Positions 2,064-63,845 of a stretch of 64,000 nucleotides of DNA are shown in pieces (position 1 is the first letter of the stretch; the number at the start of each line of letters is the position of its first letter). The DNA comes from Dimorphilus gyrociliatus (lineage: Eukaryota > Animalia > Annelida): assembly GCA_904063045.1 (NCBI GenBank), contig CAJFCJ010000005.1:2536165-2600164 (forward strand), written 5' to 3'. Under the pieces are notes generated by a model that ran no database searches, had not been told where the DNA came from, and saw only the letters and a list, made by a program, of their open reading frames with translations. A program made the translations under genes and the position numbers.

Positions 2064-3437
2064 TTATTTTTGATAAACAGTTAATTTATGTTTTTTAGAG
2101 CCAAATGATTCAATAAGGTACTCTCCACAAAGGCCTATTGTTATCAAATCGAATGAAATTCCAAAATCCACATCTTGTAAATGTTTTAAACTGGTATCGT
2201 AATAGCTTATCTTAGTGGAATTACTTAGATGAAGAATAAAACCCACAAGTGGTACAGCTGTTACGCATGCATTTTTGTTAATTTTAATACTTCTTTCATT
2301 CTTCTTATCAACATTTTTCTTATCTATCGATATTAACCTTGATTTGGTAATAAAAATCACATTTCCATTGGTAAGTATACAAGCGTGCCTTATCTTGTAA
2401 TTCTGAAATTGAAGAATTTGATCATCTAATGCATCTTCTAGTTTAATATTCCATTGGAAATCCTTATTAACGAAATAGCTATAAGTTTTATTTATGTTTC
2501 TCAATAAAACATAAATATTTCCATTCTTATCTTCAAAGGCGGATAGTTTAAGTGCCTTCTCTGCATTGGATAGAGTGAAAAATTGGATTTCATCATTTTC
2601 CATACAGCTTGACATAACTAGAGATTTGTTTCTGTGAATAGCAAAAGTATAATGTTCCGTTTTATCGAAACTAACAATATCTTGATTTAAAGATATTTTC
2701 GATATTACTTCATCTTCTTTCATCAAGTTAAGAGTATTACCAGAAGATCTATCAAGCTCGAGTAAACCTTTCAATGTTAATACAAACGGACCTTTGATAT
2801 CGCAATATGTTTGTTGTTTAAAATTTTTCGTTACCAGCTTATCCTCTAGATAGCAATGCTTTAAATGAATTGCAAAATTTGCTGGAAAATTTTGATCACA
2901 ACTTAAAACAGAAATAAAGCTGTGAAATTTTTCAGATATTGAATCAAGGTCAGTAAAATCATTACTTAAATTCGATTCCATTTTATCTAAAGTATCCATT
3001 TTATCCTTATTTAAAATTATAGCTTCTTGTTGCTTTAGAATTTTTATCATTGACATAATCTTTTCCCGACGACAATTATAAATAGTTAAATCTTCGAAAG
3101 GACATTTCGCATGATCCCTTACACACAAGCTGCACAGGTCTTTCTTTTTACATTTTACGCATATAATAACTGGTAGAAGCTGTCGATTATGCTTGGAGCA
3201 TTTTGAAAAATTCGAGACCACATTATTGCTAAGTAAATTAGATCGTTGCGTATTCTTAGGGTTGAATGGCTCCCTACATACTGGACAGTTATGAGTAAGT
3301 TTAGATACAATTTTCCAACAAGCCAAACAAAAGGTGTGTTGACATGAAAGTTGAATATTCTCCTTATTTATCCAATTTTCCAGACAAATAGGACACTTTA
3401 AGAAACCTTTCTGCACACGTACAATTTCATAGCTCAT
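2064..3437 (-). CDS. TRIM-like E3 ligase: RING + B-box + short coiled coil + degenerate beta-propeller (divergent member)
   Basis: RING CPICLENW..LSCQHTFCLACW..CPVCR; B-box CSKH..CVKC..LCSLCVRDHAKC; propeller motif ACILTNGNVIF. Start set at aaaATG MSYEIV (3437) rather than the ORF-track start. Confidence 0.85.
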   Translation of the reverse strand: MSYEIVRVQKGFLKCPICLENWINKENIQLSCQHTFCLACWKIVSKLTHNCPVCREPFNPKNTQRSNLLSNNVVSNFSKCSKHNRQLLPVIICVKCKKKDLCSLCVRDHAKCPFEDLTIYNCRREKIMSMIKILKQQEAIILNKDKMDTLDKMESNLSNDFTDLDSISEKFHSFISVLSCDQNFPANFAIHLKHCYLEDKLVTKNFKQQTYCDIKGPFVLTLKGLLELDRSSGNTLNLMKEDEVISKISLNQDIVSFDKTEHYTFAIHRNKSLVMSSCMENDEIQFFTLSNAEKALKLSAFEDKNGNIYVLLRNINKTYSYFVNKDFQWNIKLEDALDDQILQFQNYKIRHACILTNGNVIFITKSRLISIDKKNVDKKNERSIKINKNACVTAVPLVGFILHLSNSTKISYYDTSLKHLQDVDFGISFDLITIGLCGEYLIESFGSKKHKLTVYQK

Positions 3438-4267
3438 TTTGCCCTCTCTATCGATACGTCCAGTTCGTGCAGTAAATATATACGTAATATGGTATAATAT
3501 CTGATGTACCAATAGAGCAATTATATTTCCAGTTTCTGTTTCTGTTTCCTATAATCTCTCTTAGAAATATCTGACTTTAGCTATAAAGCTATTCACAGTG
3601 AATTAATAATTAGCAGAGACAAAATATGATTGCGCAATAAACCAAAAAACCACATACCAAGATCGATATGAGCTAAAAGTTTACAAATAAGAAACATGCA
3701 TGAACTTGTCCAATGGATAATTTTATATATATACAGTATATATATATATGGTTATAATGCTGTTTACAATTTTAAATCACAAGTTCTAACTATGTCGATT
3801 TGCTTTTATATTCTCTTCAAAATCGTTAAGTGGTTTCAATCTATTTTGGTAAAGGTAAAATTTTTTATATGGCTATATAATGTAACTCATTCAGTCTGCT
3901 GTTTACAATCTCATGTTTCCTCAATTCAAGAAATATTATCTATATAAATTACGTAAACTTGACTTTTGAGGAAAGCTTATGTTGATTATTCATCGTCATT
4001 TCAAAATTCTAAAAGCGTTCTTTCATTTTATATATGAAAATAATAATAGATAAATAAATATGTAATATTATACTAATAATAATAATGCTTAAAAATTTCA
4101 AATTTGAAAATATTCGAAATTAAAAGTTTTTGAGCGATAATAAATAAGCCAGTAATATCGCTACTCGCCATTTTGAATTTAGACCCACGTGGATGGAGTC
4201 GAAACTCAGAAACTATCTGTTAAACTGCGTCAAGGTTGGTTATAGAAATTAGTAAACGTAGCTAATT

Positions 4268-4329
4268 TAGTATGATGACTTAGTTATCCCTGTCTGATAT
4301 TTTAGTGAGGAAAGTTTCTGTCTGATAAT
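4268..4329 (+). ncRNA. snR38: Box C/D snoRNA, snR38/SNORD1 family, copy 1
   Basis: Box C ATGATGA 4272-4278; guide GTTATCCCTGT complementary to LSU rRNA ACAGGGAUAAC; D' CTGA 4294-4297; C' TGAGGA 4306-4311; D CTGA 4322-4325; 69 nt upstream of the 3' splice site. Confidence 0.9.
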
Positions 4330-4541
4330 AACTGAAAACTTAAAATGATATTTGTCAAATAATTAGTCATTTATTAATTTTTTTTGTCTTACAGATATGC
4401 ATCATTACTACAATAAACAGAAAATATAGTCCTTAACCATATATAAGGAAGCTTTTACAGTGAAAGTGTTCAAAAATGATGAATTGAAATATTATTAAAC
4501 AACCTTAGGCAAGTAAAATGTTCATAAATTTAGCATGAAAA

Positions 4542-4603
4542 AAAAATGATGACCTAGTTATCCCTGTCCGATATTTGAATGAGGAAAATGACTTTCTGAT
4601 CAA
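4542..4603 (+). ncRNA. snR38: Box C/D snoRNA, snR38/SNORD1 family, copy 2
   Basis: ATGATGA 4546-4552; same guide; D' CCGA; C' TGAGGA; D CTGA 4596-4599; 75 nt upstream of the acceptor. Confidence 0.88.
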
Positions 4604-4779
4604 GTGTTAACGACATATAAATATTCCTTTAAGATTTAATAACGTCAATGGTATAATAATCCTTATTTCCACAGAACCAAAAATATTCAACGAGGAATTG
4701 AAAAGAATGGAAAATAAATGAAAACCAAAGAATAATGGTAAATATTTATAGAATTTATTTATTTATATGTTAGTTTAAT

Positions 4780-4842
4780 AAAACTGATGACAATAGTTAT
4801 CCCTGTCCGATTATCATCTGAGGAAAACCCTTATCTGATAAA
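4780..4842 (+). ncRNA. snR38: Box C/D snoRNA, snR38/SNORD1 family, copy 3
   Basis: CTGATGA 4784-4790; same guide; D' CCGA; C' TGAGGA; D CTGA 4835-4838; 71 nt upstream of the acceptor. Confidence 0.87.
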
Positions 4843-5049
4843 TTTTTTACAAAAAACTCATCTTATCTCCCTAAATAAAACTACAAATTAGATTTCTATT
4901 GTTTTTTAGACATTTCATCCTTCCAACTAGCAAACGTTGTGATAGATTGTCTACTGTTGTTTATTAGACAATGAACCAGCAATGAAAGAATTTCCGTGAT
5001 GATTTGTTAGTAAGATATTAATTTAGATAGTCTTATAAGTTTAATTATA

Positions 5050-5113
5050 TAATATGATGACTTTGTTATCCCTGTCTTAAGTTTTATATGTGGAGATCTT
5101 ATTGTCTGAATAC
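5050..5113 (+). ncRNA. snR38: Box C/D snoRNA, snR38/SNORD1 family, copy 4 (degenerate D'/C')
   Basis: ATGATGA 5054-5060; guide GTTATCCCTGT; D' variant CTTA; C' variant TGTGGA; D CTGA 5106-5109; 78 nt upstream of the acceptor. Confidence 0.8.
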
Positions 5114-5949
5114 TCTCTTGTTTCTTAATATTTATAAATAGAATATATTGCAAGATGTACTATAAATTATAAATATTATTTTAACAGAAGCAACCAAGCC
5201 ATTACATTCGAATGGACCAACTACAAGGTGGAAAAAACTCAGTTTTTGTTTGGAGAAAGGAAGAAGCGAATAAGTTTTTACATTGATTATACTTGTTAAC
5301 TATTTTTATATTACAAATAAAACCTTCTAATAATATAATGATATAATAAATAGTTAATTTAATAAACTTTACAAATGACTTCAAACTTTTGATCGGTAGA
5401 TAGGTGAAAACAATATACACCATTTACTAGAAGACTATTAGTTGATTATTACATATGTAAAGGGGTCGTGTGAAAAAATAGTTTCATATGAAAAGTTCAA
5501 CATTGTTTAATGTGATGCATTCTTTACTTGGACAGATATTCAATCGAAAAGTATCTAACAAGATGAATGAAGCTTAGTTAGCATTTTCATAAAGATAATC
5601 AAATTTCACCAGCAATACGAAAGTACTTAAAAATCACTTTTAACAACTACTTGTGAAGGATAATAGCAAAACTTTGTGGCAATTTCCAAATACGAAAAAG
5701 AACAACTTTAAACTCTGCCTGTCTTAATACAAGTATTATAAAAACATAAGAATAATATGAATAATGTACAAAAAAGTGGTGAAAAAAAAAACAATTGAGT
5801 GATGTGGACATATTACTTCTTCTGTTGTTAAGGAGACAAAAAGTTCTTCGTAGACCACTGCATAGTTAAGCCAGTTAACTTATCAAGGACAAGTGGAAGG
5901 TTTTTATCGATATATACAGTGTATACTTTAAAATCTAGAATCAGGATAA

Positions 5950-7029
5950 ATGGCTACTTGTAGTTATACAGCTAAAGAGGATGAGCAAGCATGCATAATA
6001 TGCTTTGAGCTAATGATAACTCCTAGGATATTATCTTGTAAGCATATCTTCTGTCTTGATTGTCTCCGACGTCTTCGAGGAATAGTTTCAGTAAAGTGTC
6101 CTCTATGTCGACAAGAAGCAATCATACCTGGAGGAAATGTCGCTAACTTTCCAATTAAATTCTATAAAATCAAAGTTAAGGTTCCTTTAGCAAACTTTTT
6201 AGAAGTGAAACAATCGTGCCTTATACCTTGGTCTTTTAAATCCTACTTTGTTACAAATGATGGATTATATTCTGCTATAGAGTTCGATTCTCAAACTATA
6301 CATTTGGCAGTCTCGTTCGACGATCCAAATTTATGGGTTAATCTTGATAGAAAAGTTGAAAATTTTGTTATTACTGAAAGTTATATCTATGCCATAGATC
6401 ATTTAACTAGTAAAATATTATTTACTAAAAAGCCATTTGGGATAAATGCTCATTTTCGAATTTTTAACTCTACAAAAACTAGATATTTAATGGCAACTGA
6501 AGATGAAATTTGTCAATGTTATATCCTAAGTATGTGCAAAGATAAAGACGATTGTTTATTCTTTTACAATGGAACATTACAATGGTCATTTCCAAATTGT
6601 AAGGAGCTTGGTTGTATTCTTCATAATCATAATCCAATTGTAAAAACAATGGAGGATATCTACGTAATGATTGATAAATCAAACGGTACAAAGTTAAGAT
6701 TTATATGTTGTACAGGATATTCTCAAATATACGATTTATTTCCATACGGAATTTTAATATCAAAATCAACTACAAGGAAAATAAAGAAACCTAGTTACAA
6801 AAAGTCAAAATACTTTTATACGGAATACGAAAAAAATGAAATTTCAACTAGAAATGATAAACATCTTAGTCAAGAAATTACTATGGAACTATTTTCTTAT
6901 AATTATAGTTTACTTGAAGAGAAGAAAATAGATGAATTTCATAATGCAATGATGATAGGAACAACAACAAATGGTTTAGTTTGTATTTATATTTTCGGTG
7001 AAGGATTGAAAATTTACAAATTGAAATGA
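5950..7029 (+). CDS. RING + beta-propeller protein lacking B-box and coiled coil (TRIM-derived)
   Basis: RING CIICFE..PRILSCKHIFCLDCL..CPLCR..PGGNVANFP joined almost directly to the propeller (FVTNDGLY, FVITESYIYA, CILHNHNPIV, IGTTTNGLVCI). Confidence 0.88.
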   Translation: MATCSYTAKEDEQACIICFELMITPRILSCKHIFCLDCLRRLRGIVSVKCPLCRQEAIIPGGNVANFPIKFYKIKVKVPLANFLEVKQSCLIPWSFKSYFVTNDGLYSAIEFDSQTIHLAVSFDDPNLWVNLDRKVENFVITESYIYAIDHLTSKILFTKKPFGINAHFRIFNSTKTRYLMATEDEICQCYILSMCKDKDDCLFFYNGTLQWSFPNCKELGCILHNHNPIVKTMEDIYVMIDKSNGTKLRFICCTGYSQIYDLFPYGILISKSTTRKIKKPSYKKSKYFYTEYEKNEISTRNDKHLSQEITMELFSYNYSLLEEKKIDEFHNAMMIGTTTNGLVCIYIFGEGLKIYKLK

Positions 7030-7335: not shown

Positions 7336-8403
7336 ATGGCTACTCTTGAAAGAAATTGTAGAATGTGTCAAGTTTGTTCCGAATCATGGCCCCATAAAAG
7401 TCTCAGAATACTACCTTGTAAGCATATTTCCTGTATTGAATGTCTATATCAACTCCAAGGAGCTTACTTAGTTGAATGCGCAGTTTGTCATAAAGATGCT
7501 GTTGTACCTGGTAGAGATGTTGATAATTTTCCAGTGTATAAAGCTACCTTTAAGCATCAAAAAAATCTAATTAAAGTAAAAAAAAGTTCTTGCCCATGCA
7601 AATTATCTTACAAATGTTACATAACAAACGAAGGACTTTATTCAATTTCGACTAAAGATCTGAGAACAATTCTGTTTAAACCTTCATTCGATGGCTTTAT
7701 ACTACCAATCTGTCTTAATAAAGAGATATCCGACTTTGCTATTACAGATAACTATATATACGCCGTTGAAAATTCAACTGGTAAAATATTGTCGTCGACA
7801 AAACCATTTGAAGGAGAGATTAATCTAAGATTATACAGTTCTAACAGAGTGAATTCATTAAAGGCAATAGAAGATGAAAATGGCGATAGTTGTATAATAG
7901 GCTTTTTAGAATGCAGGAATAAATGTCTGTTTATTCATAAAAGTATTTACAGATGGTCATCATTGAATTGTAAGAGTATTGAATGTATTCTTCCAAATGG
8001 TAATCCTATCATAAAAACATGTGATAATAAATTTGTCATACTCGATAAACTTAAAGGTAAACCTTTAAACGAGTTAAAATGTAAAGGATTATCACAAGTT
8101 TGCAATTTTTCACCACATGGAATCCTGCTAGCGCAAACGTCATTTGACAAATACAGAAAATATTACGAAGATAACGAATATCAATACAGATACACAGATG
8201 CGGATGACGACATGGATCAGAATGAGGAGTATGGTATTAGTAATAAAATAATTAAAATGGAACTTTTCCTATACGATTATAACTTTAAATTAATAAGAAA
8301 ACTTAATGATTTTAAACGTGCTAAATTAATTGGAACAGCAAAAAATGGTAATATTTGCTTACTATTCGTTAATGGTAAAATGAAAACATACGAATGGAAG
8401 TAA
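7336..8403 (+). CDS. RING + beta-propeller protein lacking B-box and coiled coil (paralog of 5950..7029)
   Basis: RING CQVCSESW..ILPCKHISCIECL..CAVC; propeller YITNEGLY, FAITDNYIYA, CILPNGNPII; same missing segment as its neighbour. Confidence 0.88.
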   Translation: MATLERNCRMCQVCSESWPHKSLRILPCKHISCIECLYQLQGAYLVECAVCHKDAVVPGRDVDNFPVYKATFKHQKNLIKVKKSSCPCKLSYKCYITNEGLYSISTKDLRTILFKPSFDGFILPICLNKEISDFAITDNYIYAVENSTGKILSSTKPFEGEINLRLYSSNRVNSLKAIEDENGDSCIIGFLECRNKCLFIHKSIYRWSSLNCKSIECILPNGNPIIKTCDNKFVILDKLKGKPLNELKCKGLSQVCNFSPHGILLAQTSFDKYRKYYEDNEYQYRYTDADDDMDQNEEYGISNKIIKMELFLYDYNFKLIRKLNDFKRAKLIGTAKNGNICLLFVNGKMKTYEWK

Positions 8404-8996: not shown

Positions 8997-10643
8997 ATGG
9001 CTGCTTCCGCTTCAACCGAATACGTACTTAAGCAAGAAGAACTTATATGCGCAATTTGCGTGGACTCATGGCTGGAGAGGGATCCCAGAGTACTGCCATG
9101 CAACCATACTTTCTGCTTCATTTGCCTCAAAAGTCTTTTAAGAGGAGGCTTTGCAGAATGTCCAATATGTCGTGCAAAAGTTAACTTAATGGGAAGAAAT
9201 ATTAACGATATCCCTAAAAATTCTTTGCCAAATGCAATTGAAAAGATTGAACCTATTGTTCAGGTGTGCACCACGCACAAGAGAAAGATACTCAAGCCTT
9301 TACTTTGTTGCAAAACATGTAGAAAGTTAAACTTATGCGCTCTTTGTATTGACATTGACCATTCTATGGAAAATTGCTTCATAGTTACGGTCAATTCTCT
9401 TGAGAATAGATTAAGAAAACTTCGAAGTAATTATAAAGTCTCTATAAATCAACACGAAATGAAAATTTCAAAAACTGAAGCGGAAGTTATAAGAGATATT
9501 GAAGAAACTAGAAACTATCATATAGCTGATGTAAGAAATCAGTCAGAGAAAATGATACAAAAGGTAAAGAGATATTATCAGGAGAAAAGAGCAGAATTAA
9601 AAGATAATTCTAACGAAATAAATAACATATTGATAACTGAAGCGGATGTTGAAAATCAATTAAGAAATTTATCAGTTGTGGAGAAACCAACTGTTAATAG
9701 TTGCCCAAGTAAATTATCTGTCTATTTTAATTACAAAAGTCATGGAATTTATAAAAATTTCAAAAGAATAAGGCAACAATTTTTTCCTATGACCGAAACT
9801 GAATCGCATTTTATTGCTAACGATGGATTCTATTGTATTTCAAAGTCTAATAGGGCAACTTTAATGCATCAAGAATCATTCGGAAGTTCAATATCAAAAG
9901 CTACTCTTGATCGAAATGTTGAAAAAATTGTCATTACTGATAGATATCTTTACGTTATTGAATGTTCTTACAGGAAAATTATGATAGCCTGTAGACCTTT
10001 CTATCAATTTATTGATTTGAGACCATTCAGTTCAATAGAAGCTAATGATATCAAAGCTATAGATATTGAAGAGGATTCGTTTGTTTTGACATTCAACTCG
10101 GATGCTTCTAAATGTTCTTATTTTATTAATAAAAACTATCAATGGCATTGTTATAGTTGTAGAGAACTTGGATGTATCCTCAAAACTGGAAATCCTATAA
10201 TTAAAACTTCGGATTGCAGATATGTAATGATGGATAAATACAAAGGTATTGAGATCATGTCAATGAAGTGTCCGGCCAATGCAGTCATCTATAACTTACA
10301 TCCTCTTGGTCTTCTAATAGCAAATACTGTTGTTTTCAATGAGAATTCAAATGATGGATGTGCATTTGAAAAGAGTTTAAAGAAAGCAAGTCCAATAGGG
10401 AGCAAGTGGCATATGAAGCCAGCGTTTAAAGGGGAAAGCGGGTATGCGAGCAAATATGACATGAAAATTGACCGTGCAAGGAAAGAACGCATAAACAAAA
10501 TGAATCTTTTGCTCTTCGATTACCAGATGAACCAAAATATTGTCGTAAACAGATTTGAGAATGTACAACTCTTAGGAACAACAGATGATTCCTTAATTTG
10601 TCTTTACTCTTCTGGCGACAATTACAGAGTTTATAAATATTAA
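8997..10643 (+). CDS. TRIM-like RING-B-box-coiled coil + NHL-like propeller
   Basis: RING CAICVDSW..PRVLPCNHTFCFICL..CPICR; B-box CTTH..CKTC..LCALCIDIDHSMENC; propeller with a long C-terminal loop insert. Confidence 0.92.
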   Translation: MAASASTEYVLKQEELICAICVDSWLERDPRVLPCNHTFCFICLKSLLRGGFAECPICRAKVNLMGRNINDIPKNSLPNAIEKIEPIVQVCTTHKRKILKPLLCCKTCRKLNLCALCIDIDHSMENCFIVTVNSLENRLRKLRSNYKVSINQHEMKISKTEAEVIRDIEETRNYHIADVRNQSEKMIQKVKRYYQEKRAELKDNSNEINNILITEADVENQLRNLSVVEKPTVNSCPSKLSVYFNYKSHGIYKNFKRIRQQFFPMTETESHFIANDGFYCISKSNRATLMHQESFGSSISKATLDRNVEKIVITDRYLYVIECSYRKIMIACRPFYQFIDLRPFSSIEANDIKAIDIEEDSFVLTFNSDASKCSYFINKNYQWHCYSCRELGCILKTGNPIIKTSDCRYVMMDKYKGIEIMSMKCPANAVIYNLHPLGLLIANTVVFNENSNDGCAFEKSLKKASPIGSKWHMKPAFKGESGYASKYDMKIDRARKERINKMNLLLFDYQMNQNIVVNRFENVQLLGTTDDSLICLYSSGDNYRVYKY

Positions 10644-10812: not shown

Positions 10813-12408
10813 TTATTTTATATCTCTTAATTTATATAAAGCAGTTTCAGAAGAATTTGAACAAATGAAAGTTGATTTTCCATATCCTAAGATCTTTGAA
10901 CACTGCTTTAACTTTTGCTTTTGTTTGAAAGCGTAATCGTAAAAGTATATAAAGCTGTCATCATAATCTTGTTGTAATACTATATATCCGTGTGGTAAGT
11001 ATTCAAAAATATCTTTAACGTTTGGTATATTGAATGATTCTTTGATCGATCCATCATCAGCCGAGAGGAAAATTAGAGTTTTATCAATCTTATTTTGAAC
11101 GATAATATCACCATTACACCTCATAAAAAGACCAGAGAATAAAGCGTTCTTAATCATCCAACGAAAACTTCCATTAACAAATAGGTAGTATTTATCTTTT
11201 CTTTTAGCACCTACATATTTTAATCCCGTTTGATCTTCTCTAGCTACAATCGATGTGAACGATTTATTATAAAAATGCTTAAACTCTACAGTTTGCAAAG
11301 GAGTAGATAATTCGAAGTGTAAAATATGACCATTATCTGATGATAGACCATAAATATCATGATCAGTCATTGCAAATTGCGATATAGTTGGTTCAAGTAG
11401 GCAACTTTCATCAGGTAAATTTAGAAATTTTCGGAAAACTATCCGATTAAACTTCTTTCGTAATACTGATTTTAAATAATTATCCGATTGGAGGAAGAGA
11501 AATCCACCGTTTCTTATATAAATTGATGGAGATTTGATTTTTTCTATTGAGAGAAATTTAACTAATTCCTTTTGAGGAGAACAATCTTGATTATTATTAT
11601 CTAATGACATTTCAGTTAGATTCAATGATTCTTTCGATAACAAATCATCAATTGGAGGTTTATAATTACGATTTTTCTCTGTTTTTTCTTGTAAAGCAAC
11701 AGCAAGCGATACTCTTGGCGGTTGTTCTAGTATTAATTTTGTTTTTGGTAACATTTTTAAATAGGAATCCAATTGTTTCTTGTTTGTAAGAGTAGAATTC
11801 ATATTGCTCATCATAGCATCCAATTCATGATTTTTCGTGTTATAAAATTCCCTAATCTTCTCTTTCAGTTTGGAAAACTCCTCTTGAAGCAGTTTATAGC
11901 CAGCAACTTCGTATTCTCCTATAGCTTTTATTAAAATATCACTATTTTCTGAATTGATGTTCTTTTGATCATTAAATGCCTGTTCATATGTTTTCATTAA
12001 GTTCGGTGAAGATTTACAAGGTATAATTCGACAATGCAATCCCGAATGATCTTGATTTAAACAATCTTCACAAATTGGTGGTGAATTGCAAGTTTTACAA
12101 AAAATTGGAGGAGAAATTAGTTCTTTTAGGTGTATTTTACAATTATGAATCATATCCTCTTCCAATGATTGCGTGAGAGAAGAAATTAAAAGATTCCTTG
12201 GAAAATTAATAACACCTCCGTTAGGAATTGTTACGTTTTGCCGACAAACTGGACATTTTATTGTATTATTCGTTTCCAAGTTCTCTAGACAATCAAGACA
12301 AAACGTATGCTGGCAAGGAAGTACCCTTGGTTTATTTCTCAGCCAAGATTCTAGACAAATAGCGCAGCTTAACGTTTCCTCATTAACAATTAAACGTCTA
12401 CCTGCCAT
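10813..12408 (-). CDS. TRIM-like RBCC + propeller
   Basis: RING CAICLESW..PRVLPCQHTFCLDCL..CPVCR..PNGGVINFPRN; B-box CKIH..CKTC..ICEDCLNQDHSGLHC; extended linker. Confidence 0.92.
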   Translation of the reverse strand: MAGRRLIVNEETLSCAICLESWLRNKPRVLPCQHTFCLDCLENLETNNTIKCPVCRQNVTIPNGGVINFPRNLLISSLTQSLEEDMIHNCKIHLKELISPPIFCKTCNSPPICEDCLNQDHSGLHCRIIPCKSSPNLMKTYEQAFNDQKNINSENSDILIKAIGEYEVAGYKLLQEEFSKLKEKIREFYNTKNHELDAMMSNMNSTLTNKKQLDSYLKMLPKTKLILEQPPRVSLAVALQEKTEKNRNYKPPIDDLLSKESLNLTEMSLDNNNQDCSPQKELVKFLSIEKIKSPSIYIRNGGFLFLQSDNYLKSVLRKKFNRIVFRKFLNLPDESCLLEPTISQFAMTDHDIYGLSSDNGHILHFELSTPLQTVEFKHFYNKSFTSIVAREDQTGLKYVGAKRKDKYYLFVNGSFRWMIKNALFSGLFMRCNGDIIVQNKIDKTLIFLSADDGSIKESFNIPNVKDIFEYLPHGYIVLQQDYDDSFIYFYDYAFKQKQKLKQCSKILGYGKSTFICSNSSETALYKLRDIK

Positions 12409-40012: not shown

Positions 40013-40023
40013 TGAGACAAGAC

Positions 40024-48250: not shown

Positions 48251-48373
48251 AAATTTAGATTTTAATGACTAAAATGAAAGAAACAATTTGATTAAGATTA
48301 TTCATTACTTTGTTTGAAAAAGTGACTTTTTATTGTATTTTTTTTTTTATATACATCTATAATGCGTGAGAAA

Positions 48374-53105: not shown

Positions 53106-54611
53106 ATGGCGACTGACAGCCTTCAATTTGAAGAAAGTGCTCTCGTTTGTAGTCTGTGTTTGGATTTTTGGGTTGAAAATGATCCGAGGGTTTTACCATG
53201 TCAACATACGTTTTGTTTTCAATGTTTAAAAATGTCTCCAAGCAATATTTTAACCACTTGTCCAGTTTGCCGTACGAAAGTAAACATTAGGAAGGAAAAT
53301 ATTAGTAATCTACCTAAAAATATATTAGCCAATTCGCTAAAAGAATCATCAAGGATGAGATTAAAGAATACAACAGTTTGTAAAGAGCACAATCAAGTCT
53401 TATGCAAACCGAAGCTTGTTTGTAAAACTTGTAAGGAATATAATATTTGCGAAGAATGTCTCAATGATTCTCATAAAAATTGTCAAATTCGCCTATTCGA
53501 ACATTTAAATAGAGAGACGAGACTATTAAAGAAAAGATGGGAGCCTGTATTAAATAGAATAGAATGTAATTTAAGAAAAAATGCAAAGAATTTCAAAATG
53601 GAATTGAATGAAATTGAAATGAAATTTCGAAAAAATTTCATAAAAATCAGAAATGAATTAGAACGAAAAGAAGAAACAGAATTAAATAAAATAAAATTAA
53701 TGAGAAATAGGCTTAAAGGTGAATTTTATAGAATGAAAGATTTAGAGAGAGAGATAGAGAATTTTAAAAATGACTCTAAATTTTCATATACAATTCCAAA
53801 TGTTGAAATTGAATTAAATCTATCAGAAAATTGCGCTAATACTAGACAAAATAAAGTATTAGTCAAGATCCAAGAATTCCATAATTTGGATTGCGATATA
53901 TCTTTTACAGATATTGGTATTATTAAATTATATTCAAATCAAAACAATCAACAATACTTTCGTATTGAATTTGAAAATTCTGAAGTAAAGGAAATACCTG
54001 TTAATCATACTATCAACACGTTTGCAGCTAATAAAAATTTTATCTATACTTCTAGAGTTCATCCTTATATAAGTTTGACAAAATGTTCTATAAATTCAAT
54101 GGCAGATGGATATCATTTTGAAATTATTGATAATTTCTACGAATTGGTTGGTAGGAACATCGGATTTATTGCGTCAGATAACGATTACGATTCATTTTTA
54201 TATATCTTTGCAAAATTTGGAGATCTTTACTTTAAACTTTATAAAAATGGTGAAAAGATTTGGTATCAAAGGTTTAAAATGAATCTTGTTGATTGTTGTT
54301 TCCTTAATAATGGTAATATACTATTGGCCGGCGAAGATTATTTACAAGTATTACATAAAGACAATGGTGAAAAGATCTTTGAAAAGAATACGCAACCAAA
54401 AATTCAATCTATAACATCAGTGCCAAACAACGGATTCATGTTAACAAGATACCAAGAACAACTTATCTATATCTATAATGATTGTTTTCATTTAAGTAAG
54501 ACAATTGAAATTGATTTTTTCCCATCCAAAATTCAAATGACAAACTCATTCAAACTTTTAATTCAAAATTTAGATTGTCCATTAACAGCTGTATTATACA
54601 AATATATATAG
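53106..54611 (+). CDS. TRIM-like RBCC + propeller
   Basis: RING CSLCLDFW..PRVLPCQHTFCFQCL..CPVCR; B-box CKEH..CKTC..ICEECLNDSHKNC. Confidence 0.92.
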   Translation: MATDSLQFEESALVCSLCLDFWVENDPRVLPCQHTFCFQCLKMSPSNILTTCPVCRTKVNIRKENISNLPKNILANSLKESSRMRLKNTTVCKEHNQVLCKPKLVCKTCKEYNICEECLNDSHKNCQIRLFEHLNRETRLLKKRWEPVLNRIECNLRKNAKNFKMELNEIEMKFRKNFIKIRNELERKEETELNKIKLMRNRLKGEFYRMKDLEREIENFKNDSKFSYTIPNVEIELNLSENCANTRQNKVLVKIQEFHNLDCDISFTDIGIIKLYSNQNNQQYFRIEFENSEVKEIPVNHTINTFAANKNFIYTSRVHPYISLTKCSINSMADGYHFEIIDNFYELVGRNIGFIASDNDYDSFLYIFAKFGDLYFKLYKNGEKIWYQRFKMNLVDCCFLNNGNILLAGEDYLQVLHKDNGEKIFEKNTQPKIQSITSVPNNGFMLTRYQEQLIYIYNDCFHLSKTIEIDFFPSKIQMTNSFKLLIQNLDCPLTAVLYKYI

Positions 54612-55087: not shown

Positions 55088-56596
55088 ATGGAGATGAATG
55101 AATATTTAGTAAAGGAGGATCCTTTAATATGTACAATATGCTTAGATTTATGGATTGGAAAGAATCCTAGAGCTCTACCTTGTCAGCATACATTTTGCGA
55201 AGATTGTTTAAAAACAACTATCGCTAATAAATGTATAGTTTGTCCTCAGTGCCGTTTACGAACTCAACTACCAAATGGCAAGATATCTGATTTACCTAAG
55301 AGTGTTTTCGATAGTAACATAACGATAAATTCAGTTCAATTTTGCTCTAGACATTATCAAAAGCTTATAGAACCAAGATTTGTTTGTCAAAGTTGTCATA
55401 TGGAGAATTTATGCGAAGAATGCCTCAATAATTGCCATACTCAAAGTACTTGCGTCATAAAATCGCACGAATCTATAAAACAAGATTCAAAAGAATTTAA
55501 AGATAACTGCCAAAAGCATATAAACCAATGGACAATTTCAATTAAAAATGAAATTGATTACCTTCAAAAGAAACTATTTGAATTAGAGAAAACTTGGTAT
55601 AGTACAATTAGAGAGAAATTAATAAAATTAAGAAATAGGATAGAGAAATACGAAGAAGATAAATTTGGAATACTTAAGACAATATCCGAAAATATTGAAA
55701 ATACATTTTTCGACGAAGATCTATGGATAGAAAGTATTAAAACTATTACAAATACTGTATTAATTGATAATAATAAATTGGAAATTCAAATTGATTACGA
55801 TATAATGGAAAGTGAATTGAATGATTTAAAAATAATTAAAACTTCTAGCGAATTAACTACAAACTCTCCATTTCATACTTGCTTCTCATTTGGTACAGAT
55901 GGATACTACGGTCTCAATCCTATAATAGATGCAAAGAAACTTCTTTATATATCAGGTTTAAATGTAAATAATAACAAACAATTCCAATTAGATAAATCTA
56001 TATCCAATTTTGTTATTTCGGACAATTATATTTATGCGTTAGAAGAGGAAACTGGTAGATTATTAAGTGCTAAGAAACCTTTTGATCAAATGATTAATTT
56101 AAATATTATCAATGAAGATGAAAAATTTGATAGTCTAGTTATCACAGAAAATATAGATATTGATGAAAGATATGCTCTTCTAAATACAACTGATTCAACT
56201 TTAATATTTTTAAATAATGATAAATTTATTTGGAAAAATACGTCGTTATCTTCTGCTATAGCTGATTTTTGTATTCTAAACAATGGAACTTCAATTGTAG
56301 CTTCAAAAAATCTTTTATTCTTTTTTGATAAAGAGGATGGTAACATTTTACGTAAAATCAAAACGGAAATATCCATTCCTATATCAGTTTGTTCTCATCC
56401 TAAATCTGGATTTTTTCAAGTTAATCTTAATGAATCTATTATAAAATACTATGACGATAATGTAAACTTGAACAGAGTGTATTTTGTCGGCTATAGTCCA
56501 TGGTGTATAAGATTTTCAAATTGTGATCAATTCTACCTTATTAACGATATTGTTATGTCTAATCATATCTTTTTCAGATTTAAATTAACTATTTAA
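55088..56596 (+). CDS. TRIM-like RBCC + propeller
   Basis: RING CTICLDLW..PRALPCQHTFCEDCL..CPQCR; B-box CSRH..CQSC..LCEECLNNCHTQSTC. Confidence 0.92.
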   Translation: MEMNEYLVKEDPLICTICLDLWIGKNPRALPCQHTFCEDCLKTTIANKCIVCPQCRLRTQLPNGKISDLPKSVFDSNITINSVQFCSRHYQKLIEPRFVCQSCHMENLCEECLNNCHTQSTCVIKSHESIKQDSKEFKDNCQKHINQWTISIKNEIDYLQKKLFELEKTWYSTIREKLIKLRNRIEKYEEDKFGILKTISENIENTFFDEDLWIESIKTITNTVLIDNNKLEIQIDYDIMESELNDLKIIKTSSELTTNSPFHTCFSFGTDGYYGLNPIIDAKKLLYISGLNVNNNKQFQLDKSISNFVISDNYIYALEEETGRLLSAKKPFDQMINLNIINEDEKFDSLVITENIDIDERYALLNTTDSTLIFLNNDKFIWKNTSLSSAIADFCILNNGTSIVASKNLLFFFDKEDGNILRKIKTEISIPISVCSHPKSGFFQVNLNESIIKYYDDNVNLNRVYFVGYSPWCIRFSNCDQFYLINDIVMSNHIFFRFKLTI

Positions 56597-56998: not shown

Positions 56999-57736
56999 AT
57001 GTTCGCCAAAGTATCCAAAATTTCAGGTCATACGTGTTGTTCAATTTGTTCTCTTCCATGGATTACAAAGAATTCGAGAACTTTTTCGTCTTCTCATAAA
57101 ATTTGTAGTAATTGTTCGATAAAACCTGTAAAGGAGAAGTATTCAACTACATGTCAATATTGTCCTGAGGAGTGTAAGTTCATTATGAAAAATGACGATC
57201 GTTCTGAATTACGAAATAGAATCGGGCCTGAAAACGATATTATTAATTATATAAAATATGATAGCGATGATGATGATGATGATATAAATACCCAGGAAGT
57301 TATTTGTCAGTACTGCAAAGGTACTTATTCATGTCAATTATGCAATGTCAAGGATCATTGTGAAGAATCGGTAATAAATCAAAATGAACTAATCACCATT
57401 ACACAAGAGAAAATGACTGAGATGAAAGATCGAATAATTGAGAATCTTGATGATGTTAAAAATCAAGTACAAAGCATTTACTCAAAAGCTAGACGAGTAC
57501 TTCAGATGAAAGTTGATAATGAAAAGGAAAAATTGAATAGATTTAAGACGGATTATTTACAACAATACGATGATCTAAGAGATAAGATTGGAAATATTTT
57601 TATAGATGAAGAGCAAACTGCAAAAGATTTATTAAATCTTAAAAACGTAAAAGCAACTTTGGAAAGGGATGTAGATATTCAATTTAATGTAGATCTTAAG
57701 AAGAGAAACGGAGCAGATTTCGAAATAGAAAAATGA
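56999..57736 (+). CDS. Truncated TRIM-like protein: degenerate RING + partial B-box + coiled coil, no propeller
   Basis: RING CSICSLPW..SSSHKICSNC..CQYC (third Cys ligand replaced by Ser); poly-Asp tract; CQYC..CQLCNVKDHC; stop right after the linker. Confidence 0.65.
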   Translation: MFAKVSKISGHTCCSICSLPWITKNSRTFSSSHKICSNCSIKPVKEKYSTTCQYCPEECKFIMKNDDRSELRNRIGPENDIINYIKYDSDDDDDDINTQEVICQYCKGTYSCQLCNVKDHCEESVINQNELITITQEKMTEMKDRIIENLDDVKNQVQSIYSKARRVLQMKVDNEKEKLNRFKTDYLQQYDDLRDKIGNIFIDEEQTAKDLLNLKNVKATLERDVDIQFNVDLKKRNGADFEIEK

Positions 57737-58156: not shown

Positions 58157-58978
58157 ATGTCAAAAAAGAATTTATTATTCTCAGTTGACGAAAGAAAGAT
58201 GAAATGTGAATTATGTTTAACTTCGTGGTATGGGAATACTCCTAAAGTTCTTAATTGTGAACATACATTTTGCAGTTCTTGTCTGGAAAGTATCGTTCTA
58301 TTATTCTTCGTCAGATGTCCTACATGTAATAAAGTAACTGATTTGGAAATGGGAGGAGTTGAACATTTACCCAATCATTTTATTGATAATGATTTCCCAT
58401 TGTACGAAGAAGAAGTATGTAATATTCACAATAGAACTCTATTATATCCAAAGCTGGTTTGCGTTTCTTGTAAGAAGATTCTGGCATGTATAGCTTGTAT
58501 TGATCTTGATCATACGAAAGAATCATGTTCTATAAGATCTTACGATAGCGCTTATCAATCTCAAAGGCAATTCCGCAGAGAATATATTTCAAAATTGAAC
58601 GAAGCTGAAGAATCATTTTTGGCTAATATCCTTCAAACTACAGTAGATATTGAGAGTATGGAAAGAAGTTGGCATTCCAAATTATCTATAAAATTAAGCA
58701 ATATAATTGATACAATCGACAATTACGAGCAGAATATCTTAAAAGTGTTCAAGAGATCGTTGAAGAAAGCTGAATATCCTTTGACCACCGAAGATGTAGA
58801 GAAAGAATTGAAAATGTTGGAAGATTTAATGATAGATATATTTAATCAGCCGAAACTAATCATTAAACTCGGTTTAGAATTTAACGAGTCAATTAACTCT
58901 GTTAAGGAAATGAATAATTCACAACAGATGTGTGAAAATGATGGAAAAAATGTTCAAGTTCACGATCTATGTCAATAA
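58157..58978 (+). CDS. RBCC-only TRIM-like protein
   Basis: RING CELCLTSW..PKVLNCEHTFCSSCL..CPTC; B-box CNIH..CVSC..ACIACIDLDHTKESC; ends after the linker; the next gene's stop codon is 176 bp away. Confidence 0.85.
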   Translation: MSKKNLLFSVDERKMKCELCLTSWYGNTPKVLNCEHTFCSSCLESIVLLFFVRCPTCNKVTDLEMGGVEHLPNHFIDNDFPLYEEEVCNIHNRTLLYPKLVCVSCKKILACIACIDLDHTKESCSIRSYDSAYQSQRQFRREYISKLNEAEESFLANILQTTVDIESMERSWHSKLSIKLSNIIDTIDNYEQNILKVFKRSLKKAEYPLTTEDVEKELKMLEDLMIDIFNQPKLIIKLGLEFNESINSVKEMNNSQQMCENDGKNVQVHDLCQ

Positions 58979-59154: not shown

Positions 59155-60729
59155 TTAACTTAATTCATAGATACGAGCTTTAGAAATATTTTCAGAGTGT
59201 ATCACTGCGAAACGATTTTCACTTAGCATATCTATACGATAAATAGGTAATTTCATTGGTGTAATTTTAACAATCCGAAGATCCTCATTGTATATTTCGA
59301 TTTTACTTTGATTTCTTCTACAGAGCAATAGTAGATTTGCACTTGACCATACAAGCGATATCTCTCCTTCAATTGGTGGAACTATTTTGCTAAATTCAAT
59401 TTGACGTTTAACCATTCCAGAAGATTTGTCTATTATAGCAAAAAGATTTGTAGATGTTACAAATATATCTCCATTTGGTTTAGAACATGCGCTAACACAT
59501 TGTAAGTGAATTCTATTTCTGCGCCATACAGTTTGCTCATTTTGAATAAGTTCGTGGCTATATAGACAATCAGATTCAATTAATAAGACTCTTTGTCTCT
59601 CTTCTTTATATTCGACTGAGAAAATGTTGATAATTCTCCTTTTAGATACTTTTAAAACTTCAAATTTAATTCGCTCTGTTTCCGTCAGTCTTCCTTTGAC
59701 TAATTTTTCTCTATCTTCGTAAACCACGTAAATGTATGGAAAAATTACAATAAACTTATGAAAATCTGAAGGAATATCGAAGACTTTTAGTACTTTATTG
59801 TTATTTCTTTTAATAATTTCGGATTGACCCGATCCGTAGCTGGGTTTATAATTGAATAGAAAATTTTCAGAGAGATAATATAGAGATAATATATTATTGA
59901 TAACGCCTTTCTCATCTAAACCAGGCTTTTGAATTTCTGCTTTCACTTCGGTCAAAAAGCCCATTAGATCATTATTCACCACTGTTTTTTCCTCTAAATA
60001 TGAATTTACAGTTATTTTCGGAGGTCCAGAGAAAACTAATCTTACACTTAAGCATTTCTCTAGTTTTTCTTCTAGTTTTTTCCTATTTATGAATACGCCT
60101 GTTAAAGAATTATCGAGTAAATTAAGCATGCTTTTCTTCCCATCATTATAGGCTTTAATTTGATCTTCAATCTTTCCTAGCTCCTCTTTGAGAATGAGCT
60201 GAGCTTTATTTGAGAATACTTGAAAAGTTTGCTCTAGCTTTTTACCATCTTCCGTCACTATACCTTTATATTGCTGTATAACGTCCTTATAGATTTGTCT
60301 AATTGGTTCAAGTTCGCTATAAATATTCTTGTATGAACATATATTGCATTTAGTCATATTATGCTCAAAATCTATACAATGTGAGCACAATCTATCAACT
60401 TCGCAAGTTTTGCAAATCATTCTTGGATGAATGAAAGGAATTTTATGCTTTTCGCAAATTTCCTTGGTCCCTTCGGTAAGATTTCTTACCCATTTTATAG
60501 AATCTGAGAGTAAGTTCCTAGGTAGACCAATAACACCCTTCTTCGTTAAAGAAGTATTCTTTCTACAAATAGGACAGCAAATAACATTCTTTGTAGACGC
60601 TTTGATAAGGCATTCAAAGCAAAATATGTGTTGACAAGGTAGAGCCCTCGAATCTCTAGACAACCAATTTTCTAAGCAGATAGAGCATTCAAGACTCTTT
60701 TCATTGATAATAAATTTCCCCTCCTCCAT
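59155..60729 (-). CDS. TRIM-like RBCC + divergent propeller
   Basis: RING CSICLENW..ALPCQHIFCFECL..CPICR; B-box CEKH..CKTC..LCSHCIDFEHNMTKC; propeller ACSKPNGDIFV. Confidence 0.9.
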   Translation of the reverse strand: MEEGKFIINEKSLECSICLENWLSRDSRALPCQHIFCFECLIKASTKNVICCPICRKNTSLTKKGVIGLPRNLLSDSIKWVRNLTEGTKEICEKHKIPFIHPRMICKTCEVDRLCSHCIDFEHNMTKCNICSYKNIYSELEPIRQIYKDVIQQYKGIVTEDGKKLEQTFQVFSNKAQLILKEELGKIEDQIKAYNDGKKSMLNLLDNSLTGVFINRKKLEEKLEKCLSVRLVFSGPPKITVNSYLEEKTVVNNDLMGFLTEVKAEIQKPGLDEKGVINNILSLYYLSENFLFNYKPSYGSGQSEIIKRNNNKVLKVFDIPSDFHKFIVIFPYIYVVYEDREKLVKGRLTETERIKFEVLKVSKRRIINIFSVEYKEERQRVLLIESDCLYSHELIQNEQTVWRRNRIHLQCVSACSKPNGDIFVTSTNLFAIIDKSSGMVKRQIEFSKIVPPIEGEISLVWSSANLLLLCRRNQSKIEIYNEDLRIVKITPMKLPIYRIDMLSENRFAVIHSENISKARIYELS

Positions 60730-61360: not shown

Positions 61361-61370
<10 letters not shown>

Positions 61371-61639
61371 GTACGAGTGAATGAGATAGATGGACTATCA
61401 TAATTAATATATTAAAATTTAAATCTATAATTTACTCAATTAGGTTTTTAAAGGAATATTCAAAAAAATTAATCTAATACTTTTTATTATGTTGCTTTTT
61501 ATTATAATTCTAATTGAGAAAGTTTCAGCATATATGAATGAGTAGTTTTTGAGACTTGGTCAATTTATATTGAAAATATATGGCATAAAAATCACTTCTG
61601 CTTCGGTCTTCAACCAGATAGGAAAGCTATAAATAACGT

Positions 61640-62555
61640 ATGATGAGTACTAAGTAAGTTTTTTAAAGTTTTCTTTTATACGATTTGCATTTATTCTATT
61701 ATTTTTCGTTCTAGAAAAGAAGACTTAAATTCGAAAAGTCTTGATCATTTAGTATCAACTGAAGCGCTCCTGTGTAAAATATGTTGTATACCATGGGTAG
61801 AGAGAGATCCGAGAGTTCTTTCGTGTCAACATATCTTCTGCTTTAGCTGCCTTTTAGAAATGTATGGAGGAAGAGTTTCACCAACAATAACATGTCCTTC
61901 GTGTGGAATGGATCATTTTGCTGAAAATGGAGTGGCGAAATTGCCTAAGAGCATAATACAAGACTCAATTTCTACCATTTCTGTCGAGAAAAGCTCCTGT
62001 AAGAAACATAATAAGGAAAGAATTTTGCCACCAATAGTATGTCTAACCTGTAAAGCTCTGAATTTATGTCATGATTGTATCGACAAAGATCATACTAATA
62101 GTCTTTGTAAAATTGTTTCGGAAGGAAAATTACTTGACCAATCGAAAGCTATAAGGCAAAAATTTAAGAATGAATTAGAAAACTATAGGAACACTGTAAA
62201 GGTTGATGTGGCCAAAATTCAGAGCTCTCTCAGAGAAGTTGAATGTAAATGCCGAATAATAGTTGATAAGTCAATTGCTGATTGTAATATTTCAATTGAC
62301 GATTATGAAGAGGCTATGACTAGAAATTTTAAATCTATTCAAGATATATTAAATGATGTTTTCATAGATGATGATCAACTTTTTGGACGGCTAGTTTCTG
62401 ATTCTGTTAGAAAAGTTAACTTTGAACAGAATCCTAGTTTTGCAATTGATACTAAAGTATACGAAGAACTAATTAAATATACCGATAAGAATAATGGATT
62501 GAATATACTAAAGAAAATATTGAATATCTTTAGAAAGAGTAATTATAACAATTGA
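61640..62555 (+). CDS. Two-exon RBCC-only TRIM-like protein (~284 aa)
   Basis: Exon 1 61640-61653 (MMST K), intron gtaagt..ttctag 61654-61714, exon 2 from 61715 restores the RING CKICCIPW..PRVLSCQHIFCFSCL..CPSC in frame with the 61860 ORF; B-box CKKH..CLTC..LCHDCIDKDH..C. Confidence 0.82.
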
Positions 62556-62978
62556 AAATGATGACGAAATTTAACGAAATATTCAAAAGCTTTCTACTTG
62601 AATATTTTACAAATGACAAATAACGAACGATTTACTATTCTATCCTCTTTTCTAATATCTTCAATGATCTATAATAATGTTAATAAAACACCGTCATTTC
62701 TTTTATAAAATTCTCTAACATTTGTTTACTTTAAAGCGTTTAGTTAAAAATATTTTTATAGGCTTATTTCGTTTTAAAATGTAACTTCTCCGAAGTAAAT
62801 TGGTGTCTTTAGAACATTCCTTCATATTTTAGAATGTATAGACAGCTACTCAATAAGTTGTTTATACAATTTTTTATGGCTCTTGAATGAATAATACTCA
62901 AAGTTTAATGAGAAAATGATACTACTCTTCAACTGATTTTTTATTGTGATTGAATGTTTTTAATCATTTGAACTCAAA

Positions 62979-63845
62979 ATGTCGAATAGAAAAGAAGAAC
63001 GGATGAAAAACACCGCGCAAATGCCGCCTAAACGCCTTTTGTTTACAGTTGATGAAAGGAAATTGGAGTGTAGAATTTGTCTTGACTCCTGGCTGAAAAG
63101 AGAACCGAAAGTATTGTCTTGCCAGCATACTTTTTGCCGTGAATGTTTGGAGAGCTTGGGTGGTCAGTTTTACCTGACTTGCCCTCTTTGTCGAGCTTCT
63201 TCTTATCTGCCGACGGCAAGTGTTGATAATTTACCTGATCATTTCCTCTCTAAATCATTAATTAAATTTCCGAGAGAGGAGAAAGCTCAGATTAAATGCG
63301 AAAAACATAAGGAAGCGGTAATTTTTCCCAATTTGGTATGTGTAACGTGTAAGGTAAAAGTTTATTGCTGCTCGTGTATTGACAATGATCACTCGAGTAC
63401 AAAATGTAAGATAAGATCGTTCGAAAACCTTAATATGGAAATGAAAGAGAAAAGAAAAAATTATCATTATAATTTCAAAGTCAATACTATGCTCCTTCGA
63501 GGAAATTTGAGAGAGACGAGAGAAGATGTTGCTAGAATTCATAGTTCTTGGTCTAAGCAGATTGATAAAATGTTTAAGAGTATCAGCGATAAAGTAGACG
63601 AATTTGAACAAGTTAAATTAACTTCAATTGATAATTTACTAAAGAAAATTGATAACGTTTTCTTTGATGAAGAAGAAATACAAAACGAGATTCAAGAGAC
63701 TACGAAAACTACTCTAAGAATAAAGAAACCTCAGGTTATGCTAAATTTAAATCTTGTCTCGCAAATCTTTTCCGGAAGTCCAAGTTTAAATGGAATGAGA
63801 ATCAACATTAGCCCACGAAAAGGAACTCAATCTTATCAATTATAA
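62979..63845 (+). CDS. RBCC-only TRIM-like protein (paralog of 58157..58978)
   Basis: RING CRICLDSW..PKVLSCQHTFCRECL..CPLCR; B-box CEKH..CVTC..CCSCIDNDHSSTKC; shares LLF(S/T)VDERK with 58157. A downstream exon beyond the window cannot be excluded. Confidence 0.82.
   Translation: MSNRKEERMKNTAQMPPKRLLFTVDERKLECRICLDSWLKREPKVLSCQHTFCRECLESLGGQFYLTCPLCRASSYLPTASVDNLPDHFLSKSLIKFPREEKAQIKCEKHKEAVIFPNLVCVTCKVKVYCCSCIDNDHSSTKCKIRSFENLNMEMKEKRKNYHYNFKVNTMLLRGNLRETREDVARIHSSWSKQIDKMFKSISDKVDEFEQVKLTSIDNLLKKIDNVFFDEEEIQNEIQETTKTTLRIKKPQVMLNLNLVSQIFSGSPSLNGMRINISPRKGTQSYQL

Follow-up and report, generated by a model that had tools for sequence, protein, structure and literature searches.

The 64,000-nucleotide stretch of the Dimorphilus gyrociliatus genome analysed here (C5:2536165-2600164, the window) contains, between positions 2064 and 63845, a tandem array of genes for proteins resembling those of the tripartite-motif (TRIM) family. 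The array is probably an old, lineage-restricted set of E3 ligases related to TRIM2, TRIM3 and TRIM56 that stably keeps about 20 distinct specificities. In the mechanism we propose, each protein would dimerise via an antiparallel coiled coil, as TRIMs do, its RING would recruit an E2 enzyme, and its C-terminal propeller would pick the target with the face made of the B-C and D-A loops. The number of specificities follows from the behaviour of this face, which differs between paralogues and is partly kept in orthologues.

The open reading frame (ORF) listing of the window holds 28 ORFs of at least 200 amino acids in this interval. Hidden Markov models (HMMs) of the RING, B-box, coiled coil and C-terminal domain, derived from an alignment of 18 copies and run over the six-frame translation, assigned 27 loci to a single family. 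An earlier note, made from the letters of the window, had described about 28 paralogues, and the array is thereby confirmed. Eighteen loci are intact and full-length: a RING, a B-box and a coiled coil (together RBCC) precede the C-terminal propeller in proteins of 457-570 amino acids, and the coding region is a single exon formed by one uninterrupted ORF. The other nine comprise two RING + propeller genes, one RING-less gene, one propeller-only ORF, four RBCC-only loci and one full-length copy with a single TAA. Two genes within the span, the ORF at 37737-38615 and a lectin/ITIH gene at about 41949-45978, are not members. The host genome measures 77.9 Mb and is roughly 29% GC. Outside it, RING-bearing proteins with this propeller were found, among 1.84 billion cluster representatives, only in Logan runs SRR23372216/228/229/231; the contigs of these runs (24-30% GC), which represent the second species compared below, carry family genes in tandem.

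The N-terminal half supports the TRIM-type E3 ligase identity proposed in the earlier note. Pfam RING families scored above cut-off in all ten copies examined, and the consensus, LxCxICLxxWxxKDPRxLPCQHTFCxxCL...CPxCR...LPKN, contains the RING signature which that note had picked out. The eight zinc ligands of the RING are invariant in 30 sequences from the two species; of the eight Cys/His ligands of the B-box, all are invariant in 18 window copies, and across the 30 sequences they vary hardly or not at all. The B-box and TRIM_CC are weak in Pfam, zf-B_box staying under its cut-off (E 0.037 and 5e-4). When the family profile was compared with PDB, the best matches were the RING-B-box-coiled-coil of TRIM3 (1e-20; 8amr residues 13-218, a segment that spans the B-box), TRIM2 (5.6e-19) and the RING of TRIM56 (3e-16), the order being TRIM3, TRIM2, RNF4, TRIM56, then TRIM21, TRIM32 and TRIM5. 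By this order, the RBCC half appears closest to the TRIM2/3/56 kind. Positions that we take to be E2-contacting in other RING E3s (the Ile of CxIC, the Trp, the Pro after the seventh Cys and the Arg/Lys after the last Cys) are largely kept among the 30 sequences: Ile17 in 26, Trp22 in 25, Pro54 in 22 and Arg/Lys57 in 23.

An AlphaFold2 (AF2) model of the full-length copy 14354-15892 (predicted local distance difference test, pLDDT, 83) consists of the RING, the B-box, a 70-residue helix (130-199) with shorter helices that run back, and the propeller, which is joined to them by a short linker of low confidence; between coiled coil and propeller this model has no filamin domain. A homodimer test on residues 85-240 gave a score of 0.47, against 0.00 for the best control; the runs had 36% or more of their contacts in common, and the pLDDT of the partner was 67 or higher. 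In calibration, 21 of 30 proteins with solved same-chain pairs attained the mark set for this test, as did none of 23 solved as single chains. The predicted contacts are antiparallel and centred around residue 177 (192-159, 177-177, 155-195).

The C-terminal domain was modelled with AF2 on an alignment of 22 window copies, the structure being that of the copy at 48374-49165. The model (pLDDT 91.3, predicted template-modelling score 0.88) has 24 strands in six blades, so that the six-bladed propeller surmised from the letters is borne out by both the model and the structural search described next. The six repeat motifs pointed out in the earlier note are all present, in the forms T..G.Y; T.NYIY; A.ED...Y; CIL.NGN.I; P..G.LL; G.T..G, and correspond to the A-B hairpins of the six predicted blades. 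An exhaustive structural search returned six-bladed propellers spread over about two Z units: TolB (Z 17.4), the NHL domain of Brat (16.9), sialidases (about 16) and the NHL domains of Mei-P26 (16.1), NHL-2 (15.6), Lin41 (15.4), TRIM2 (15.3) and TRIM71 (14.8). Thus, as far as a predicted model can tell, NHL, TolB and sialidase propellers are tied as nearest folds. In Foldseek, seven-bladed WD40 proteins led by E-value and the best TM-score (0.64) belonged to the NHL domain of Brat.

At the sequence level the domain escaped classification. None of the 22 propellers matched Pfam NHL (PF01436) even at E<=1; the same profile readily detects canonical NHL genes in other parts of the genome and none in the window. 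Alignment of the propeller profile by hhalign with five canonical NHL domains, three from the same genome and two from amphioxus, reached a probability of 25%, a value that speaks for neither side. Pfam gave no consistent family, WD40 and PQQ appearing only below threshold and in one or two of the 22 copies, and a Pfam scan of the copies yielded no SPRY match. Since no copy matches Pfam NHL, membership in the NHL family is unproven. Of the class VII TRIM-NHL label attached by the earlier note, the RBCC kind and the six-bladed propeller therefore stand and the NHL signature does not. The proteins are laid out like class VII TRIMs, and the simplest account is that they descend from such a protein; we file the family as a TRIM2/3-like RBCC with an unclassified six-bladed propeller.

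A possible, though not favoured, alternative is that the propeller is of the WD40/PQQ type and was shuffled onto a TRIM2/3-type RBCC, the likeness to class VII being one of layout only. The propeller profile, when run against PDB sequences, matched a PQQ-type propeller (8.7e-5) and the WD40 domain of Prp19 (1.7e-3) ahead of the NHL domain of TRIM2 (0.03); those remote matches that were checked among the 1.84 billion cluster representatives were WD40/PQQ-like; and language-model neighbours, a weak indication, were DUF5711/PQQ clusters. Together with the silence of Pfam NHL, these matches speak for such a transfer. They are countered by the six blades of about 40 residues, which is the number found in NHL rather than seven or eight, by the Brat NHL domain giving the best Foldseek TM-score, and by an RBCC belonging to the NHL-bearing TRIM group. 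NHL, WD40 and PQQ repeats form one propeller superfamily (a Pfam clan grouping), and weak profile matches therefore cannot settle the ancestry.

The same structural matches raise the thought that the proteins bind RNA and regulate it post-transcriptionally, in the manner of Brat, Mei-P26, Lin-41 and NHL-2, with a diverged NHL domain reading mRNA motifs in development or germline. NHL domains of Brat, Mei-P26, NHL-2, Lin41 and TRIM2 are among the best matches (Z 16.9-15.3), the RBCC is closest to that of TRIM2/3, and old, conserved genes under purifying selection would suit housekeeping or developmental regulators. We find this distinctly unlikely, given that the NHL sequence signature is missing, that TolB and sialidase propellers score equally, that the putative binding face is not uniformly basic (see below) and that such roles could be covered by the canonical NHL genes present outside the window.

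How the propeller varies was examined by assigning strands A-D of the six blades from the DSSP string of the model, the N-terminal strand completing blade 6. The BC and DA loops, which lie on one face, are 10.5% identical between paralogues and 37% between orthologues; the corresponding values are 26% and 49% for the AB and CD loops of the other face and 22.5% and 48% for the strands. Chance identity is 6.5-7.1%, and the difference between faces among paralogues is highly significant (Mann-Whitney p about 1e-8). Restricting the paralogue background to the ten window copies that have an orthologue gave 13% for BC/DA, 28% for AB/CD and 23% for strands. The BC/DA face is thus the fastest part of the domain, yet it is about three times more conserved in orthologues than in paralogues. 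Large length changes all fall in BC, DA and one CD loop. The net charge of the variable face ranges from -11 (48374-49165) to +8 (10813-11583), 11 of the 22 copies being acidic. Because identity of this face is near chance among paralogues and 37% among orthologues, each paralogue has a face that is distinct and partly conserved. We read these as putative paralogue-specific binding faces under purifying selection; variation concentrated on one side of the propeller fits the diversified recognition repertoire which the earlier note had suggested.

The relationship between the two species indicates when this diversity arose. Paralogues are 17-42% identical overall, the best pair reaching 42%. 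Mean paralogue identity is 38% in the RING (31% without the zinc ligands), 35% in the B-box (22% without), 18% in the coiled coil and 20% in the propeller. The contrast drawn in the earlier note between a conserved E3 module and a diverged C-terminus was therefore overstated, hyper-divergence extending over the entire protein. In a maximum-likelihood tree of 21 copies from the window and 17 from the second species, the two species are interleaved: ten pairs are 1:1, with SH-aLRT 96-100 for eight, and the species label needs 16 changes. Monophyly of the window copies was rejected, the best such tree being 1635 log-likelihood units worse (approximately unbiased test, p about 1e-4). Order and orientation are common to both species as well: contig L011 (-,+,+,-) corresponds to 10.8-19.9 kb of the window, L020 to its left end, both RING + propeller genes included, and on L012 the lectin/ITIH gene comes after the counterpart (orthologue) of 40012-41538. 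In places the arrays differ, for example on L018 and in the right part of L012.

Identity between orthologues is 28-64%. For the ten pairs, the NG86 synonymous divergence (dS) lies between 1.0 and over 4 or is undefined, the non-synonymous divergence (dN) is 0.23-0.78, and YN00 mostly failed; dN/dS, where computable, is about 0.08-0.5 and unreliable. Since dS is saturated, there is no valid test of positive selection; paralogues have diverged further still. Adjoining genes outside the family have diverged alike (35-60% identity between species), so that no obvious difference in pace sets the family above its neighbourhood. Judged from these comparisons, the array is old and stable, most duplications having preceded the species split, and it is not churning recently.

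In the genome of D. gyrociliatus the propeller profile recovered 23 window copies; beyond the window it found a distant copy of full length at C5:3984094 (L027) and four partial matches, all weak. A protein homologue search with one full-length copy returned only paralogues from the same genome and weak matches to amphioxus TRIM-NHL proteins along the RBCC half. By these profile searches, the propeller type appears almost confined to the window and the syntenic array of the second species. The RBCC is more widespread: its profile found at least 60 further loci in long ORFs with other C-termini, at least one of them similar to leucine-rich repeats (LRR). Two RBCC-only relatives lie to the left of the window, at C5:2523009-2523773 (-), 13 kb off, and C5:2533445-2533966 (+), 2.7 kb off; the array therefore reaches beyond the reported span.

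Two of the dispersed genes, L022 (C112:26000-30800) and L024 (C91:107500-111800), encode proteins of 1233 and 1011 amino acids that share their first 50 residues (MINKKMATLQYVINQQTLECAICLESW...) and continue, after the family's RBCC, into an extended LRR-like region of repetitive make-up. The pair has the look of a recent duplication, for which the window array offers no parallel.

Hypervariability on one face in a tandem TRIM array invites comparison with immunity, and the earlier note had proposed an analogue of the finTRIM and TRIM5 loci. On this view the array would be an innate-immune repertoire of sensors or restriction factors built on a propeller and driven by host-pathogen conflict. 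Net charges from -11 to +8 on the top face suggest many different ligands, other C-termini, the LRR-like one included, are joined to this RBCC module at loci outside the window, and lectin/ITIH genes occur within and beside the array. Moreover, according to the genome paper (PMC7854359), the few families that did expand are for the most part immune genes duplicated locally, which its text does not name; TRIM, tripartite, NHL and E3 are not mentioned in the main text or the supplements searched. The evolutionary pattern does not favour this role. The array has no young duplicates, the best pair being 42% identical; orthology is 1:1 and syntenic between species whose dS is saturated; dN/dS is about 0.08-0.5 across the domain where computable; and the variable face, at 37% in orthologues and 13% in paralogues, has more the look of maintained specificities than of continual escape. 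An immune role is thus not supported so far, and we regard it as unlikely. Equally tentative is the idea that the array and the dispersed RBCC fusions together make up an annelid intracellular sensor-ligase system, in which each face would recognise a conserved pathogen or danger molecule of its own and trigger signalling by ubiquitin. If true, the animal would possess a panel for recognition, encoded in the germline and inherited stably, whose propeller is at present unknown to all domain libraries.

A further reading takes the array to be decaying: duplicated DNA in neutral drift, whose frames happen to be open by chance. One copy has a premature stop (20491-21954), one RING is damaged (56999-57736) and several loci lack some of the domains, as a decaying array would. 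In DNA of 29% GC a random codon is a stop with a probability of 0.083, so that the chance of an open frame is about 2e-19 for 500 codons and about 7e-11 for 270 codons. Yet 26 of the 27 loci are open, though only 25-42% identical to their nearest relative; among the short loci all but one are open, at 25-37% identity. Given these tiny chances, the frames must have been maintained. The zinc ligands are invariant, orthologues have been kept in the second species, and contigs from a public run (see below) point to transcription. Open frames and retained orthologues effectively refute the notion of decay, to which we assign a negligible probability. The birth-and-death remnants mentioned in the earlier note are largely a misreading: the short loci are open and old, and the types of domain loss recur in the second species, which has two RING + propeller genes at positions matching 5950-7029 and 7336-8403.

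The in-frame TAA of the full-length copy 20491-21954 (+), the sole one in the family, occupies 21313-21315, precisely at the junction of coiled coil and propeller. Its position suggests a possible route by which the RBCC-only genes 58157-58978 and 62979-63845 could have originated.

Transcription was assessed in the single public run that contains the stretch (run X1), the kind of which is unrecorded and which offers contigs only, not expression levels. Over 46400-52300 its contigs follow the gene borders. The gene at 48374-49924 (-; 516 amino acids), whose propeller is the modelled one, is covered by one contig of 1962 nt that skips two GT-AG introns on the minus strand: one of 76 nt in the 3' untranslated region (UTR; 48231-48306) and one of 91 nt in the 5' UTR (49948-50038). 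This confirms that the coding region is one exon between UTR introns. The full-length gene at 50633-52153 (+; 506 amino acids) lies under one contig from end to end (50375-52136), and that at 46685-48250 (+; 521 amino acids; orthologue L012:7144-8748) is in part under fragments. In view of the spliced joints, run X1 was taken as RNA evidence for the three genes. In 48374-49924, 68 nt separate the stop codon from the 3' UTR intron downstream of it, and after splicing the 3' UTR overlaps the convergent gene 46685-48250 at the 3' end of the latter. With an intron so placed, the mRNA could become a target of nonsense-mediated decay.

Several points weigh against the proposed set of stably kept specificities. 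Relaxed constraint on the BC and DA loops contributes to their variability, these loops being more variable in many propellers, and even between orthologues the face is less conserved than the rest (37% against 48%; Wilcoxon p=0.004). That this face is the ligand site is argued from the analogous NHL and WD40 propellers. We infer that the proteins act as ligases, that they dimerise in vivo and that the variable face binds the ligand. A pass in the homodimer test may, on eukaryotes, come from the model's memory of solved TRIM dimers. The RNA nature of run X1 is deduced from its spliced joints, and the second species was sampled over only about 50 kb.

The remaining members, recognised by the domain HMMs, are as follows from left to right. 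At the left end a full-length gene of 457 amino acids with a short coiled coil (2064-3437, -) has its orthologue at L020:1505-2959 (28% identical). It is followed by the two RING + propeller genes, which have neither B-box nor coiled coil: 5950-7029 (+; 359 amino acids, malin-like layout), which forms a clade with L020:8016-9104 and L020:9384-10427, and 7336-8403 (+; 355 amino acids), in a clade with L020:8016-9104, its likely orthologue at 43% identity. Next come full-length genes at 8997-10643 (+; 548 amino acids, with an insertion of about 50 residues in the BC loop of blade 5) and 10813-12408 (-; 531), both supported by the alignment. The copy used for the full-length and homodimer models (14354-15892, +; 512 amino acids) is 64% identical to L011:4530-6131, and its two full-length neighbours, 16515-18047 (+; about 500-510 amino acids) and 18160-19872 (-; 570, with a long linker insertion), have orthologues at L011:6643-8145 and L011:8330-9715. 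Beyond the copy with the TAA lie 22352-23815 (+; 487 amino acids, full-length; orthologue L015:264-1733) and the propeller-only ORF 23932-24771 (+; 279 amino acids), 32% identical to its nearest relative.

The middle of the array holds full-length genes at 26451-27956 (+; 501 amino acids; orthologue L015:5712-7220), 28517-30013 (+; 498) and 30786-32273 (-; 495), the last two assigned by HMMs and alignment; the RING-less gene, with B-box, coiled coil and propeller (32726-34054, -; 442); and two more full-length genes, 35557-37092 (+; 511; orthologue L016:692-2242) and 40012-41538 (+; 504-508; 56% identical to L012:132-1667). To the right of the three genes under run X1 contigs are the full-length copies 53106-54611 (+; 501 amino acids, also in the alignment) and 55088-56596 (+; 502). 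The locus at 56999-57736 (+; 245 amino acids), counted as RBCC-only, is degenerate: a zinc ligand of its RING is lost (PCQH to SSSH), the B-box has no match and the coiled coil is weak. The other RBCC-only loci are the open frames 58157-58978 (+; 273 amino acids) and 62979-63845 (+; 288) and, at 61743-62555 (+), a locus with an intact, in-frame RING but no ATG ahead of it in the open frame, which may use an upstream start exon or be non-functional. Between them stands the full-length gene with the longest branch of the tree (59155-60729, -; 524 amino acids).

Several embedded elements accompany the family. The multi-exon lectin/ITIH-like gene at 41949-45978 (+) has a syntenic orthologue (L012:2386-5009; 35-61% identity per exon), and a second paralogue occurs in the second species on another array contig (L020:5870-7500). 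The ORF at 37737-38615 (+; 292 amino acids) belongs to no Pfam family; a counterpart of about 36% identity occupies the matching place (L018:595-1873), and this conservation makes it a real gene embedded in the array. The interval 4266-5116 (+) contains four copies of a C/D-box small nucleolar RNA (snoRNA) of about 70 nt, spaced by 239-274 nt, with ATGATGA ... CTGA boxes and a common guide, AGTTATCCCTGT. They score 33.8-43.5 bits against Rfam snoR38 (RF00213), a little below the gathering score of 45; at that score the Rfam scan, like a tRNA scan, gave nothing in the window. Short stretches of them are 90-94% identical in the second species (L020:5336-5369) despite the saturation of synonymous sites. 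The snoRNAs are probably intronic in a host gene between two TRIM-like genes.

TRIMs of the class VII type are normally few, multi-exon and conserved. Here a compact genome keeps about 20 intact relatives of that type with intronless coding sequences in one 62-kb array, on a propeller that escapes Pfam and was detected in this lineage only. With one face almost unshared between paralogues yet shared by orthologues, the array offers natural material for asking how the substrate specificity of an E3 is written into a propeller face. It also shows that TRIM genes can form a large tandem array without being an immune family of fast turnover. Domain libraries could gain a model of this propeller family. 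The array also bears on the view in PMC7854359 that local duplication accounts for most of the few families expanded in this miniature genome. A search of the literature on invertebrate TRIM expansions retrieved nothing specific to propeller-bearing TRIM arrays in annelids.

Among known systems, TRIM2 and TRIM3, the class VII TRIM-NHL proteins of Marin's subfamily C (PMC3503706), share with the array the order RING/B-box2/coiled-coil, the best RBCC match, the six-bladed C-terminal propeller and the predicted antiparallel dimer. Unlike them, the array proteins have no filamin/Ig domain and no Pfam NHL signature, and they are encoded by single coding exons in 27 clustered copies rather than by one or two genes. 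The NHL domains of Brat, Mei-P26, Lin-41 and NHL-2 resemble the array propeller in being six-bladed and about 250-280 residues long, with an N-terminal strand that, by strand order, appears to close the last blade; the array differs from them in a face that is not uniformly basic and in the absence of a detectable NHL motif. NHLRC1 (malin) consists of a RING and six NHL repeats without a B-box (PMC3503706). Copies 5950-7029 and 7336-8403 parallel it as RING + propeller proteins derived from a full RBCC ancestor; their propeller belongs to a different sequence family and has no known link to glycogen metabolism. COP1, an E3 with RING, coiled coil and WD40 domain, occupied the top rows of the full-length Foldseek search by virtue of its layout (TM 0.3); with a seven-bladed WD40 and no B-box, it is analogous and not related. 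The nearest language-model neighbours of the full-length protein, to be treated as leads only, are echinoderm and mollusc RING/B-box clusters of the ESM Atlas ('TRIM45-like', 'TRIM56'; score 0.89-0.92). One echinoderm B-box cluster has a propeller with a TM of 0.72 to the model; the C-terminal domains of these clusters gave no significant match to the propeller profile. Finally, the finTRIM arrays of fish and the TRIM5 arrays of primates are likewise clusters of TRIMs whose variability resides in loops of the C-terminal recognition domain. In those arrays the domain is a PRY-SPRY, the duplicates are young and lineage-specific, and positive selection is documented, whereas in D. gyrociliatus the domain is a propeller and the duplicates arose before a deep species split.

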